Assembly (NCBI GenBank): GCA_965112735.1
Contig: OZ218950.1
Location: forward strand, 6,696,001 to 6,760,000
Reading direction: 5' to 3'
Origin: Phaeosaccion multiseriatum
Taxonomy: Eukaryota > Protista > Ochrophyta, other classes
Length of the DNA: 64,000 bases
This document shows positions 43,586 through 50,400 of this stretch, piece by piece. The notes under the pieces were generated by a model. The model was not told where the DNA came from. It did not search any database and saw nothing but the letters and a program-made list of their open reading frames with translations. The number at the start of each line of letters is the position of its first letter. Position 1 is the stretch's first letter. Made by a program: the position numbers and the translations under genes.

Positions 43586-44287
43586 CTATGCAGAGCCCAG
43601 GGCCTCGGCAATCTTTACTGCCACGGCCATCGACGACTGAGGGTTCTGACCTGTGATGAGCTTACCGTCGACTACTGCATTCACCCCCCAGGCATCAACG
43701 CTCTCGTATATACCGCCAAGCCCACTCAGGGCCGTCTGGGTGAGCAGCGGCACCTTGTCGGTAAGGCCGACCTGATCCTCTTCGATGTTGCTGAAGCCGG
43801 TGATCTTCTTGCCCTTTACGATGGGCTCTCCAGAGGCCGGATCGTTGACGCCGATGAGGCCACAGGCACCGTGACAGACAGAGGACACAACACCGCCCTG
43901 GCTGTAGATTGCCTCGGCGATCTCCTTCATAGCAGCGTTGTTGGGGAAGTCGAAGCAGGTGCCGTGGCCTCCAGGCAAGAAAACCGCGGAAAACTCGCCG
44001 GCCTTGGCCGCGTCGATGAAAGTCGAGGCAGCCTTGGTGTCAGCGACAAGGGCCTGCGCTGCAGCATCAGCCTGGAACTTGGCAGTCTCCTCGCCGATGT
44101 AGGGGTCGGCGCAGCTCTTGGCATCCCATGGGACGGCACCACCCGCAACAGAGGCGATGGTCACCTCAAACCCCTGGGAGGAGAGATGATTGTAGGGCGC
44201 AGCCACTTCCTCAAGCCAGCATCCTGTCTCTTCATCAGGGATGCCTTGGACAGCGCTTGTGCAGATGAATAGAACCTTCTTGGGCAT
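43586..44287 (-). CDS. DJ-1/PfpI family protein (Hsp31/glyoxalase III-like), intronless
   Basis: KVLFICTS, TGCWLEEVAAPY, VFLPGGHG, SSVCHG (catalytic Cys-His), ITGFSNIEE, LITGQNPQS; 233 aa. Confidence 0.93.
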   Translation of the reverse strand: MPKKVLFICTSAVQGIPDEETGCWLEEVAAPYNHLSSQGFEVTIASVAGGAVPWDAKSCADPYIGEETAKFQADAAAQALVADTKAASTFIDAAKAGEFSAVFLPGGHGTCFDFPNNAAMKEIAEAIYSQGGVVSSVCHGACGLIGVNDPASGEPIVKGKKITGFSNIEEDQVGLTDKVPLLTQTALSGLGGIYESVDAWGVNAVVDGKLITGQNPQSSMAVAVKIAEALGSA

Positions 44288-44435
44288 GGTACGAAGTGGT
44301 GGAGAGAGAGGAGGAGAGAAGAAGGAGAGAGAAGAAGGGAGGGAAGAGGGAAGGTATCCGACGACGGAGAAATTGAGGGGAATCAAAGACGCACATATAT
44401 ATGTTCAGGACGGGCAGGTGTCTGATACCAAAGTG

Positions 44436-47400
44436 ATGGAGGACGTAGACGCGCAGCAGCGTGCAGTACTCACAGCCTTTTTCCACGCCACGAGCGGACC
44501 CGGCTGGTCTAACAGGGCAGGATGGAACACCGGAGCACCTTTAGAGAACTGGGTCGGAGTGACAGTACAGAATGGCTATGTGGTGAAGCTCAACCTGCAA
44601 GAGAACCGCCCCAAATGTGAGAGACACGTGATTATGGTTGTTCCGCCTGAGGTCCTGAAGAGTATTCTGAAGTAAAGAAGGCTTGAAGATGTGATGGGTC
44701 TAGAATATTCGGGAAGGACGATGCAAAGCGGGACAAGAGAAGGCATGAGGCGTGGCAAGATGTGAGGCGTGGCAAGATGTGGCAGTCCAGAGACCCGTTC
44801 GTGTCCCTTTCACTTAATGTTAGTGTGACCAAAGAACTTTCCTTCGCTCCGCAGGGAGCATTCCACCCGAGCTTGAGAAATTGAGCCTCTCCGGCAACGC
44901 TCACTGGTAAGTGGTACGCATACCCGTTCGCGTCCCTTTGACTTGATGTAAGTATGGCTGAAGAACTTTCCTCCGCTCCGCAGGGAACATTCCGCCCGAG
45001 CTTGGAAGTCTTGAGAACCTGACGGTGCTCAACCTACAAGGGAACCAGCTCACTGGTAAGTGGTACGCACACCCGTTCGCGTCCCTTTGACTTGATGTTA
45101 GTATGACCAAAGAACTTTCTTCCCTCCACAGGGAGCATTCCGTCGGACTTCGGGAAGCTGGCAGAGCTTCGAGAACTTCACCTGGGTTGGAACCAACTCT
45201 CCGGTAAGTGTTCGCGTACCCGTTCGCGTCCCCTTCGCTTGATAAGTCGTATGATGAAGAACTTCCCTCCGCTCCGCAGGGAGCATTCCACCCGATCTTG
45301 GAAGTCTGAATAACCTTACGCATCTGCACCTCGACAACAACAAGCTCACTGGTAGGTGGTACGCGCACCCGTTCGCGTCCCTCTCACTTGATATGAGTAT
45401 GACCAAAGAACTTTCCTCCCATCCGCAGGGAGCATTCCATCAGAGCTTGGAGGTCTCGTCCAGCTCACCTCTCTGTTCCTCCACAGCAACCAGCTCTCCG
45501 GTGAGTGGTACGCACACCCGTTCGCGTCCCTTTCACTTGATATGAGTATGACCAAAGAACTTTCCTCCCATCCACAGGGAGCATTCCATCAGAGCTTGGA
45601 AGTCTTAAGAACCTTGAGAGACTGGACCTCAAACAAAACAGGCTCACTGGTAAGTGGTACGCACACCCGTTCGCGTCCCTCTCACTTGATATGAGTATGA
45701 CCAAAGAACTTTCCTCCCATCCGCAGGGAGCATTCCATCAGAGCTTGGAGGTCTCGTCCAGCTCACCTCTCTGTTCCTCCACAGCAACCAGCTCTCCGGT
45801 GAGTGGTACGCACACCCGTTCGCGTCCCTTTCACTTGATATGAGTATGACCAAAGAACTTTCCTCCCATCCACAGGGAGCATTCCATCAGAGCTTGGAAG
45901 TCTTAAGAACCTTGAGAGACTGGACCTCAAACAAAACAGGCTCACTGGTAAGTGGTACGCACACCCGTTCGCGTCCCTTTCACTTGATATGAGTATGACC
46001 AAAGAACTTTCCTCCCATCCACAGGGAGCATTCCATCAGAGCTTGGAAGTCTTAAGAACCTTGAGAGACTGGACCTCAAACACAACAGGCTCACTGGTAA
46101 GTGGTGCGCGTACCCGTTCGCGTCCCCTTGACTTGATATGAGTATGACTAAAGGGCTTTTCTCCCATCCCCAGGGAGCATTCCACCCGAGCTTGGAGGGC
46201 TTGAGAACCTTACGGAGCTGTACCTCCTCCACAACAACCTCACTGGTAGGTGTTACGCACACCCGTTCGCGTCCCTTTCACTTGATATGAGTATGACCAA
46301 AGAGCTTTTCTCCCATCCCCAGGGAGTATTCCACCCGAGCTTGGAGGGCTTGAGAACCTTACGGAGCTGTACCTCCACAGCCTCACTGGTAGGTGTTACG
46401 CACACCCGTTCGTGTCACTTTTACTTAATATGAGTATGACCAAAGAGCTTTTCTCCCATCCCCAGGGAGCATTCTACCCGAGCTTGGAGGGCTTGAGAAC
46501 CTTACGCGACTGTACCTCGGCAGCAATAGCCTCACTGGTAGGTGTTAGGCACACCCGTTCGCGTCCCTTTCACTTGATACGAGTATGACCAAAGAGCTTT
46601 TCTCCCATCCCCAGGGAGCATTCCACCCGAGCTTGGAGGGCTTGAGAACCTTACGGAGCTGTACCTCGGCAGCAATAGCCTCACTGGTAGGTGTTACGCA
46701 CACCCGTTCGCGTCCCTTTCACTTGATATGAGTATGACCAAAGAGCTTTTCTCCCATCCCCAGGGAGCATTCCACCCGAGCTTGGAGGGCTTGAGAACCT
46801 TACGAACCTGTACCTCCTCCACAACAACCTCACTGGTAGGTGTTACGCACACCCGTTCGCGTCCCTTTCACTTGATATGAGTATGACAAAAGAACTCCTT
46901 CCTCCCATCCACAGGGAGCATTCCACCCGAGCTTGGAGGGCTTGAGAACCTTACGGAGCTGTACCTCGGCCACAATAGCCTCACTGGTAGGTGTTACGCA
47001 CACCCGTTCGCGTCCCTTTCACTTGATATTTTAGTGTGACCAGCCAAAGAACTTTCCTCCGCTCCACGGGGAGCATTCCCAAGGAGTTTGGAGATCTGAC
47101 CAACTTGCAGTTTCTTCAACTCCACCACAACAAGTGGTACGCACACCCGTTCGCGTCCCTTTCACTTTTCGCGTCACTTTTACTTGATATTAGTATGACC
47201 AAAGGCTTTCCTCGCATCCGCAGGGAGCATTCTTCCACCCGTTCTCGTCCCTCTTGACTTGATATTAGTATGACCAAAGAGCTCTCCTTCCATCCACAGG
47301 GAACCTTCCCAAGGAGTTGGGGGATCTGACCAACTTGACGTGGCTCTTTCTGGGGGACAACAAGCTCACTGGTGAGTGGTGTTACCAACGTGCGACTCCG

Positions 47401-50400
47401 CTGAGCTTGGAAAACTCTTGGAGCTTGCATCTTTTCTATGTGAAAATCGGGTTTGCGTAAGGAAGCTGTCGCAACATGCCGCCCGCCTTTACCTCACATC
47501 ACCGCTCCAAGTGTGCACTGACTTCCTGTGCCGCGCCACCAATGTTTTCCCTCTTCTTATTTTCTGTGCTGTTACGCCTCGCACAGGGCTTTGGGATCCA
47601 AGCTGTGATGATGCCGCTGAACAGGAGCAGGAGGTGGAAGGCCTCATTGCCTTCGCTGCGCGGCACGGCACGAGAGGGGGCTTCGATAGGAACCCGTTCG
47701 ACTTCCCCCCTCTCGGCGTAGCTAAACAAGGCAGCGCCGCCCTCAAAATTTATTATGATTCCGTGTTGGAGGGGCGTGGCGTGTACAACACCATCAAAGT
47801 GGTTCTGCTCGGTGCATCCGGTGCTGGAAAGACGAGGTATGGCTTGTATTCTCGTTGCTCTCTCGGCTGCTTCGGTTGAACTCTTCTGCAGACAAAGACT
47901 CCAAAGGCTTACCCCACGCCCTGCACCCCCGACCCATGCACAGCTTACTTCGCAGCCTACAATGTCGACGGGCTGCCCTCACAACGGGCGCAAACCCCTC
48001 AACTACAGGGGTTGAAATGGTGTCCTGGGAGGCAACGGGACCGAGGGATGAGCCCATCACAATGCGATTCTTTGATTGTGGGGGGCAGATTTTGTACCGC
48101 AGCTTGTACTCCTTCTTTTGTCCGGATGGCGCAACTTACCTGTTGCTGTGGAGGGCACGTGAGTTTTGTGAGAGTGGTGGTGAGGAAGGCTTTGACAACC
48201 GAATGCGGCTCGACGTTGAACCCTTCGTAGAAACACTGCGGTACCAAAGTGTTGCGACAGGACCTTCTCGTTTGGTGCTGGTTGGTTCCAAGTGTGACAA
48301 AGTGCCCGTTTGGGGACGAGTGACACGCGTGTTAGAGCAGGCCGACCGTATCCGAAAGCGCGTGGCTGGCATACTCACGATATCACTGGAGAACGAAGAG
48401 GGGGAAGAGGAAGAAGAAGAAGAAGAAGAAGAAGAAGCACATGGACGTGCTCGTGCTGGACGTGAACGCTTTCTAGATGCCATGCGCTCCCTACCCTCCT
48501 ACCTCGTGAGCTGCGCCCCGTGGTACAAGAGGATTCTTGGAATCCTCAGCGGAGGGTGGAGTAGGTTTGATCCATCGGGTGCCCTCCTTCAGGAACTGTA
48601 CGCGAAGGGCTGTAGGAAGTTTGTGGTTGGTGTGCCTTGGCAGGCTGCCCTCATCATGCTGGAGACTCTCTCTCTAAGAGGTACCACAGACGAAGTCTTG
48701 TGCGACACAGTCATCAAGGCGTTGTCATCTTCATCCACAGCACCGCAAGAGAGCAGGCCCAGTGTTCCCTACATCATGACCATGGGTGAGCTACGAGCCC
48801 GGTGGGACGGTCTATGCGACACGCTGCGTGGGAAGGAGCAAGAGCTGGGGGTGGACAAGGCATCACTTTTTGAGGGTGATTCGGCTACCTTGCAAGGTGT
48901 TTTGCACTGCGTCGTGAGGATGATGTAAGTCGCCGGGAACGCTAGTCTTTCCCTTTGTAACTGCCTACAACTGACCTTGCTTTCGCATATACTCTCTCCT
49001 TTCCAGGGTCCACAATGCTGTGCTCATTGTAGTAGGGGACATTGAACACGATAGGACACTCATTGTTCTCGACTCGGCTTGGTTCGCACGGATCGTTAGC
49101 CCGCTGCTGACTCCATTGGACAAGATGATCAAAAGTGGACGTGGCAATGCCCAGAGGATTGTGGTAGGCGAGGTGCGTGCCTTTTTTTCTCCTGGACAAG
49201 CTGAGTGAGGCACTGTTCCCCCGGTATGGTTCATAACATTATCATGGATGGGATCGCTCCTCGGTTGCCACTCTCGACAGGTGACACCGCAAGAGCAAGT
49301 ACGAGGAGGGGGTCAGGGGCGCTCCGACGACTTCAAGGGAGCGCTTGACTTGCTGAATGGAGACTTGACCGAAAGGTTCGCCAAGTCGTTGTGGGATGGT
49401 GTGCTCGTAAAGTGGGGGCGTGCGGCGGAAGACACGGGGATCCACGTGTTGGAGGAGAGCGATGTTAGAGCTATCCTTGAGAAGCTCGAAGATCTAGGCA
49501 TCCTGTTTCCGGTGGAGAGTTTGGAGGATGGCGGCCGACACTATCAGATCACCCTCAGAATACCAGATGAGAGCATTCCTGACGGAGAGGGCTGCCGTCA
49601 GCGAGAGCAAGCAGTCAAATGGGCAAAAGCATTCGAGAGGTGGGAGCTGGTGGTTACATTGGAGTGGAAACACCATCCTCCCTCTTGGAAGATCGGGTCC
49701 CTTGTGAGCGCGCTGGTGAAGGCTAAGCTTGGTGACACCGTTTTGCGTTGGAAGACTGGGGCTTGGCTGGCACCGGTGCGGGCCTACACTGGCTCTCCCT
49801 TTAGGGCCTACATAAACTACGACGTCGGAGAGAGAAAGCTGACCCTTGCGGCCTTTGGGGATCCGAAGGTAGCCTTGGGCAATGGGAGTGTGGCGGCGAG
49901 CGCCCTTGGCTTCATGTTGGGGACGACGCGTGAAGTCTTGTGGGACGTTGCACAGGAGTGCGGAGGATGTCGTCTCACTTGTCCGTTTTGCTCCTTGGAG
50001 ACAGTTCTTTTGTGGGAGGTAAGAGAAAACACGTGTCAAGCATGTTTTGTTTGTGAAGTGACTGCCTGATAGGTGGCGGGCTTCTGTGCTTCTGACGTTC
50101 AATTTTTTTCTTGTTCCTTTTAGGATTCCTGGCTCGGATTCAGTCGTGACGAGAAGACACTTGGAAGCCTCAACCCGAAAGGATTCAGGTGTACTCATTT
50201 GTGTCTTGACGACAATAAAGACTTGTGGGAAGCACTGGGAAACATTGATATCCAGGTGGGAAGGAGATTTGAAGCGCCGAAGCAGGAAAATGCCCAAAGC
50301 AGCTCGGGGGAGACAGAATTCGAGAAGGCCTGGAAGAATCAGCTTGACGAGGAGAACGAAGAGAAGAAACAGCAGAAGGATCAGAGGAACGATCATTTGG

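Follow-up and report, generated by a model that had tools for sequence, protein, structure and literature searches.

Does a gene that carries its binding surface on a row of near-identical cassettes reshuffle them by a dedicated, possibly somatic, process, or has it simply grown by repeated duplication? This question is raised by an array of ~149-bp units, each a leucine-rich repeat (LRR) exon with a short intron, in the alga Phaeosaccion multiseriatum. We studied the array in a 64-kb stretch of contig OZ218950.1 (the window), and all coordinates are positions in that window. A first-pass annotation had proposed that the introns act as constant homology arms or as a recombination signal. Our analysis shows that the array sits in an LRR-Roc (ROCO-type) candidate receptor gene that is real and expressed. 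The array is probably young and of germline origin, expanded by unequal crossing-over and shaped by diversifying selection on binding residues, with the intron serving as passive homology.

Tandem Repeats Finder reports one array with a period of 149, 14.6 copies, 84% matches and a score of 2494 at 44899-47079. A splice-site parse widens it to 18 units of ~149 bp at 44793-47385, which bears out the ~18 units counted in the first-pass annotation. Each unit is composed of a 72-nt exon, which encodes one LRR of 24 residues, and an intron of ~77 nt. The parse also upholds the fourteen 72-nt phase 1-1 exons claimed before: the exons of units 2-10, 12-15 and 18 are exactly 72 nt long, all 14 have an AG acceptor and a GT donor, and the introns split a Gly codon after base 1 on both exon sides. 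The exon product, G-S-I-P-x-E-L-G-x-L-x-x-L-x-x-L-x-L-x-x-N-x-L-T/S, is one LRR of the plant-specific type. On the plus strand, cassettes 2-15 (44984-46986) comprise thirteen 72-nt exons and cassette 11 (46323-46388), which has 66 nt and keeps the frame, separated by short GT..AG introns of 76-79 nt. Cassette 1 (44855-44906, plus strand), recognized by parse and alignment, is a decayed exon of 52 nt, 20 nt short of the full length. Its inclusion leads to a frameshift and a stop within cassette 2, and the reading frame is open only when it is skipped. Downstream of cassette 15, a plus-strand intron of 313 nt (46987-47299, from the parse and an RNA joint) contains two dead cassettes. In unit 16, which starts at 47070, the acceptor AG is changed to GG and the donor is deleted; in unit 17, starting at 47224, most of the exon is gone. 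The last 72-nt LRR exon, cassette 18 (47300-47371, plus strand), has RNA joints on both sides and is of a divergent type, to which dead unit 16 is related. Neither opposite-strand cassettes nor orphan cassettes outside the array were found anywhere in the window.

The first-pass annotation had stressed that the introns are more conserved than the exons. As a plain comparison this stands: mean pairwise identity is 87.6% for introns and 73.5% for exons, and in 61 of 66 pairs the introns are more alike than the exons. A special status of the intron is not supported, as nine hypervariable codons account for most of the contrast. Per-column diversity is 0.13 in the introns, 0.12 in exon nucleotides 1-23 and 0.16 in the last 8 exon nucleotides, compared to 0.36 in nucleotides 24-64. 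With the Nei-Gojobori method, the proportion of non-synonymous differences (pN) is 0.46-0.51 at the variable codons 9, 11, 12, 14, 15, 17, 19, 20 and 22 and 0.04-0.06 at the scaffold codons. The proportion of synonymous differences (pS) ranges from 0.15 to 0.33, and the intron p-distance from 0.09 to 0.14. Units 6 and 10, for example, have different residues at 9 of 24 positions and the same base at all 10 four-fold sites; their introns differ at 6 of 77 sites. The gap between introns and exons is therefore mainly fast amino-acid change at nine codons of the ligand face, and extra conservation of the introns is modest at most. Exon 3, offered before as an example of an exon between very similar introns, proved a poor choice, because the intron that follows it is the most divergent of the array (65-73% identity to the others).

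The alignment of the units also reveals how the array was built. Units 5 and 7 are identical, and the pair 5-6 differs from the pair 7-8 at only 2 of 298 positions. Unit 9 is a copy of unit 8 with one exon change. Cassettes 6, 8 and 9 are near-identical, and cassettes 10-15 form a second subfamily, in which introns 10 and 13 are identical. Units 1, 11, 16 and 17 are truncated or dead, a sign of cassette birth and death. The 5′ part of an intron tracks the type of the exon upstream and its 3′ part the type of the exon downstream. In Mantel tests, exon distance correlates with that of the intron parts next to the exon (r=0.50, p=0.04) and less so with that of the far halves (r=0.32, p=0.13). Since the intron halves follow the exon types they adjoin, the joints of the duplications lie inside introns, and this pattern of halves and exons is what repeated unequal crossing-over with intron joints produces. 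Identical copies of 149-298 bp, dead cassettes and chimeric introns together indicate recent duplication, and the earlier claim that cassettes can be duplicated or deleted is borne out in the parse and the alignment, where recent duplication, truncation and inactivation are all seen. Of the proposed role of the intron as a constant homology arm, the part supported by the Mantel test is that the joints fall inside introns; a dedicated signal or a special status is not supported. Cassette 15 (46915-46986) looks like a mosaic of the two endings present in the second subfamily, as it has Gly in common with units 12 and 13 and His with units 10 and 14. Such a combination calls for a micro-conversion or for base changes at two adjacent positions.

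To assess whether the gene is used, contigs from public sequencing runs were compared with the window; those of run X4 behave as RNA, and runs X1, X2 and X5 are DNA. The X4 contigs contain GT..AG joints at 44616>44855, 46985>47299 (72 nt on the shorter side), 47370>47586, 47834>47942, 48924>49007 and 49170>49279. Because these joints match the prediction, the 313-nt intron, cassette 18 and the Roc exons are used as predicted, and the order in the RNA, 15>18>Roc, is the order of the assembled genome. In one RNA contig, cassette 1, which shifts the frame, directly follows the first exon (44616>44855, 29 nt on the shorter side). Productive mRNA must skip this cassette, which may be in decay or may act as an off state at the level of splicing. 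The short RNA joint 46095>46322, whose shorter side has 23 nt, is consistent with a transcript that lacks cassette 10.

The remaining parts of the gene lie on the plus strand around the array. The first coding exon (44436-44616), with a putative start codon at 44436 and a donor at 44617 set by an RNA joint, encodes an LRR N-terminal cap, which has 41% identity over 49 aa to residues 35-83 of the Ectocarpus LRR-GTPase of the ROCO family. It is followed by the first intron (44617-44854; 238 nt, GT..AG, joint 44616>44855). The intron after the array (47372-47586; 215 nt, joint 47370>47586) resembles the array introns in its first ~14 nt and is unrelated to them in the remainder. Since the other RNA-supported introns of the gene measure 82-238 nt, the contrast with long introns drawn in the first-pass annotation fails inside this gene. 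In the spliced model, the exon at 47587-47836 encodes a linker and the Roc P-loop (GASGAGKTS) and is covered by a Roc profile match. The exon at 47944-48924, bounded by the joints 47834>47942 and 48924>49007, encodes Roc switch II (DCGGQ), the SKCD motif, a poly-Glu tract and part of the C-terminal region. Further C-terminal exons extend over 49007-50069 (49007-49170 and from 49279 on, by RNA joints). An RNA contig continues for ~2 kb of mRNA past 49400, and the model is open to a stop at 50067.

Skipping of cassette 1 yields a spliced model with an open reading frame of 1211 codons, which runs through 15 cassettes and takes in a complete Roc domain. All 117 positions of a Roc profile derived from nine ROCO proteins align to residues 554-685 of this model (E=3e-25 in a single-sequence search). 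The P-loop, DxxGQ and SKCD motifs are present, and the region has 28% identity over 120 aa to an Ectocarpus ROCO protein. On single exons the Pfam Roc match stays below threshold (E=1e-3). The C-terminal exons gave no match to Pfam COR-A or COR-B; home-made small profiles gave 5 bits for COR-A (E=1e-3) and nothing for COR-B, and BLAST against the C-terminus of the Ectocarpus ROCO protein returned weak collinear pieces only. A single-sequence AlphaFold model of the Roc/COR exon reached a pLDDT of 35 and was unusable, and a sequence search of the PDB yielded chance-level matches and a weak archaeal Roco (E=0.24).

The DNA runs provide a different type of evidence. Summed word depth over the array in X1, X2 and X5 is 10-40x that of the flanks, and in many short DNA contigs identical flanks enclose foreign cassette cores. 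Both observations point to paralogous cassettes elsewhere in the genome. The DNA contigs are too short to span the 149-bp repeats and are mixed with paralogues, and they have no bearing on array order or somatic change. Joints in these runs were considered as evidence of rearrangement and rejected, as they come from short paralogue contigs in which the shorter side covers 22-41 nt and foreign letters separate the two sides. DNA contigs match unique parts of the array exactly, e.g. at 45101-45267 and 47002-47160, and their cover has holes at 46462-46635.

A recombination signal had been proposed for the 16-nt core of the intron. This core occurs 18 times in the array at up to 2 mismatches, and three more matches with 3 mismatches lie elsewhere in the window; in total ~0.6 are expected by chance. 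Fifteen columns are invariant among the 11 distinct exon-plus-intron units. In the 12 distinct short introns, however, the longest invariant run of the core spans 9 columns and is not longer than column shuffling produces (P=0.054), which leaves the proposed dedicated signal without support. The hairpin GGtACGC/GCGTcCC suggested with it fails as well: four introns fold no better than shuffles (z -0.7 to +0.7), and variants of the left arm are one-sided, pair-breaking and uncompensated. An inverted-repeat scan detected no arm common to all introns, and the reverse complement of the core does not occur in the gene at up to 3 mismatches. No Rfam family matched 44000-48000 at E up to 1. The core was not found in two brown-alga ROCO loci (Ectocarpus and Scytosiphon), and a search of JGI metagenome contigs for the core with the downstream CTTGAT motif gave zero matches. 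The other introns of the gene also lack it, apart from a partial copy in the first intron, whose last 63 nt (44792-44854) resemble an array intron from the core onwards (core match at 44792; local alignment score of 44 to the array intron consensus vs a random mean of 8). Just upstream of this copy, the first intron contains a perfect 17-bp tandem repeat of 2.1 copies (44746-44781). Over the 64 kb, CpG is depleted (observed/expected 0.60); the core nevertheless retains three CpGs in most units, and in both of its variants a CpG is changed to TpG.

We favour growth in the germline as the probable origin of this anatomy. The array would grow, shrink and reshuffle by unequal crossing-over or replication slippage between the 149-bp units. 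The near-identical stretch of ~110-120 nt, made of an exon 3′ end, the 77-nt intron and the next exon 5′ end, would offer the best homology, and the joints would fall there for that reason. The symmetric 72-nt exons would keep all products in frame. After duplication, diversifying selection would quickly alter the solvent-exposed residues on the face of the LRR beta strand, while introns and scaffold codons would remain almost unchanged, because they are young and partly needed for splicing of such short introns. A role of the protein as an immune receptor would be in line with this.

Several observations weigh against this account. The first-pass annotation had named intron divergence equal to synonymous exon divergence, with congruent trees, as an outcome that would refute its reading; we find pS to be about twice the intron divergence, a marginal difference. 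For units 4-14, the values are 0.19 (95% confidence interval 0.09-0.31) and 0.088 (0.05-0.13), with a bootstrap P=0.03. Site permutation gives p=0.065, the overall range is P 0.03-0.09, and a count of events, with 4 synonymous changes at 11 sites vs ~1.7 expected, is not significant. Some extra homogenisation of the introns, or constraint on them, may therefore operate. A pairwise Fisher test on Leu third positions (p=1e-4) was discounted, as no more than three substitutions, all in two units, underlie it. Intron 14 is an exception to the pattern in which intron halves follow the neighbouring exons. The 10-40x word depth and the contigs with paralogous cassettes are more than the youth of a single array can explain. 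Finally, our case for selection is built on 24 codons in ~10 related units, and hypermutation or templated exchange of the cores may also have contributed.

How do other explanations compare? If purifying selection acted on the core as a functional element, for instance as a splicing enhancer within the intron or as a site bound by a protein, this would account for the roughly two-fold deficit of intron divergence relative to pS. The fifteen invariant columns and the CpGs kept in a CpG-depleted window are in line with it. We consider it unlikely, given that the invariant run of 9 columns does not exceed shuffling, that Rfam and folding gave no signal, and that the core is missing from the gene's other introns, the two brown-alga ROCO loci and the metagenome contigs. 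A bolder proposal is that the constant intron or its core is a recombination signal for programmed, possibly somatic, rearrangement that builds a receptor repertoire during the life of the alga. The layout of constant and variable parts is real, the cassettes are symmetric, duplication joints lie within introns and the cassette family is amplified in the genome, as seen in DNA word depth; the hypothesis has also been published for homologous genes (PMC3341825). Still, it is highly improbable. The gene is complete in the germline, its transcripts keep the genomic cassette order where RNA contigs span it (15>18>Roc), the core is neither significantly invariant nor part of a stable or compensated hairpin, no complementary site exists for it elsewhere in the gene, and the candidate DNA joints are short paralogue contigs. 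Moreover, a 2024 study reports for brown algae that neither somatic recombinants of ROCO loci nor a recombinase to match have been found (PMC11378527). There is likewise only a slim chance that a constant segment of ~118 nt, running from one exon end through the 77-nt intron into the next exon, is the substrate of dedicated exchange of hypervariable cores of 31-41 nt within or between arrays, at a high rate in the germline or even somatically. If true, it would make the locus a true cassette-based system for receptor diversification in a eukaryotic alga.

Diversity could also arise at the level of RNA, by combinatorial skipping of exons with equivalent splice sites, the introns being kept alike by selection for splicing and not by recombination. 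The exons are symmetric, productive mRNA must omit the 52-nt cassette 1 although one RNA contig includes it, and the joint 46095>46322 fits skipping of cassette 10. In Ectocarpus, splice variants of ROCO genes have been reported and put forward as the simpler explanation (PMC11378527). We regard this as possible but doubtful: the cassette-10 joint rests on 23 nt within a repeat and has the word depth typical of shared sequence, intron diversity at the two splice signals is not below that of the middle (0.12, 0.14 and 0.12 along the intron), and the identical copies of 149-298 bp are left unexplained. The array could, in addition, be an artefact of collapse or expansion during assembly, or a decaying pseudogene. 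Short-read contigs do not span it, DNA contig cover is interrupted at 46462-46635, and the frameshifting cassette 1 is present in an RNA contig. However, exact DNA matches to unique parts of the array, the RNA contig that joins cassettes 15 and 18 to Roc as assembled, and the 1211-codon reading frame intact through 15 cassettes make both very unlikely. Unequal crossing-over in the germline, with selection on the binding face, thus remains the explanation we prefer.

Some features of the neighbourhood are recorded here for completeness. A gene of the DJ-1/PfpI family (43586-44287, minus strand; Pfam E=2e-17) and the ROCO gene (44436, plus strand) are arranged head to head; the likely start codons are ~150 bp apart, and one RNA contig of 1767 nt runs across both genes. 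The best named relatives of the DJ-1 gene have 49-56% identity to it. The Glu run downstream of Roc is encoded by a (GAA)11 microsatellite (48404-48437). Contigs from public runs seem to be cut at 48393-48459, suggesting length variation or assembly difficulty. Between a 14-nt segment that opens cassettes 5-9 (45438-46047) and the beginning of the exon after the array (47597-47610) there is 93% complementarity, a potential for exon-exon pairing that is probably due to chance.

To place the gene in a family, the 312-residue Roc exon was searched against 1.8 billion representative proteins, a collection without entries from the organism itself. This search returned no close relative and only 11 weak matches, all of them Roc or LRR-Roc-COR proteins. 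The two matches with the longest alignments are from the brown algae Scytosiphon (best overall) and Ectocarpus, at E=1e-6 and 28-35% identity, and the family of both includes the LRR-GTPase of the ROCO family from Ectocarpus siliculosus. In Ectocarpus, the LRR cassette is a 72-nt type I exon encoding GxxPxxLxxxxxLxxLxLxxNxLx, accompanied by dead intronic cassettes and exon shuffling (Zambounis et al. 2012, PMC3341825). The earlier assignment to LRR-ROCO genes is hence well founded, as one 24-residue LRR per symmetric 72-nt exon matches the Ectocarpus design (PMC3341825). In brown algae, exon nucleotides 3-71 encode 23 residues, a layout termed phase 2 (PMC11378527) that is the same as here, where nucleotides 1-2 complete one codon and nucleotide 72 opens the next.

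We then used one Ectocarpus and one Scytosiphon ROCO locus as comparators; two earlier picks without LRR cassettes were dropped. Scanned in the same way, both loci showed 72-nt AG..GT cassettes of identical phase. The likeness extends to the N-terminal cap, the position of Roc downstream of the LRRs, dead intronic cassettes, hypervariable positions on the concave face, and the difficulty of detecting COR with Pfam; brown-alga COR domains were also missed by InterProScan (PMC11378527). Sequence identity, in contrast, is only 28-41%. Introns have 77 nt here vs 289-2407 nt in the comparator loci, and intron flanks are 83-85% alike here vs 52-55% there (46% for random 38-mers). Exons are 72% alike here vs 59-63%. 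The strict 149-bp tandem array also sets this gene apart from the brown-alga ROCO loci. Exon shuffling in brown-alga-type LRR-ROCO genes leaves inactivated intronic cassettes as well as cassettes that lie on the non-coding strand; here the former are present on the coding strand (units 1, 16 and 17), and the latter do not occur in our 64-kb window.

Other gene families share single aspects of this organization. In lampreys and hagfishes, the gene for variable lymphocyte receptors (VLR) is incomplete in the germline, and somatic assembly fills it with copies of flanking LRR cassettes. The likeness is in the use of LRR modules as units of diversity. Unlike VLR, the germline reading frame here is complete through 15 cassettes into Roc and is spliced in genomic order. 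Arrays of the Dscam type (PMC6071210) also have tandem similar exons, which arose as exon and intron were duplicated together, and each unit has a conserved element in its intron. Their cassettes are picked singly, whereas those studied here are joined in series. Pairing of docking and selector sequences was considered for the core and rejected, as the gene contains no complement of the core and the introns give no fold signal. In the spider silk genes Nephila Flag and Argiope MaSp2, near-identical successive introns within one gene have been attributed to rapid intragenic recombination and concerted evolution (summarised in PMC1885213). The parallel concerns the introns: silk proteins are structural, have long repeats, lack hypervariable codons at a ligand face, and share neither sequence nor function with the protein studied here.

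Compared to the brown-alga ROCO genes, the novelty of the Phaeosaccion array is its compactness and youth and not its design, which was already known. Somatic recombination was put forward as a hypothesis for the Ectocarpus LRR-ROCO genes, with an analogy to VLR (PMC3341825), and a 2024 study of four brown algae favoured alternative splicing as simpler (PMC11378527). The question has been open since 2012, and a test in Ectocarpus is difficult, since the cassettes extend over 10-20 kb with long, dissimilar introns. Here the whole array occupies 2.6 kb, so that one PCR amplicon or long read covers it, and cassette number and order could be counted directly. The route of exon shuffling, probably homologous misalignment via near-identical introns, is also displayed more clearly than in the older brown-alga loci. 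The locus is otherwise another example of a known receptor design, and its main use is as a compact test bed.

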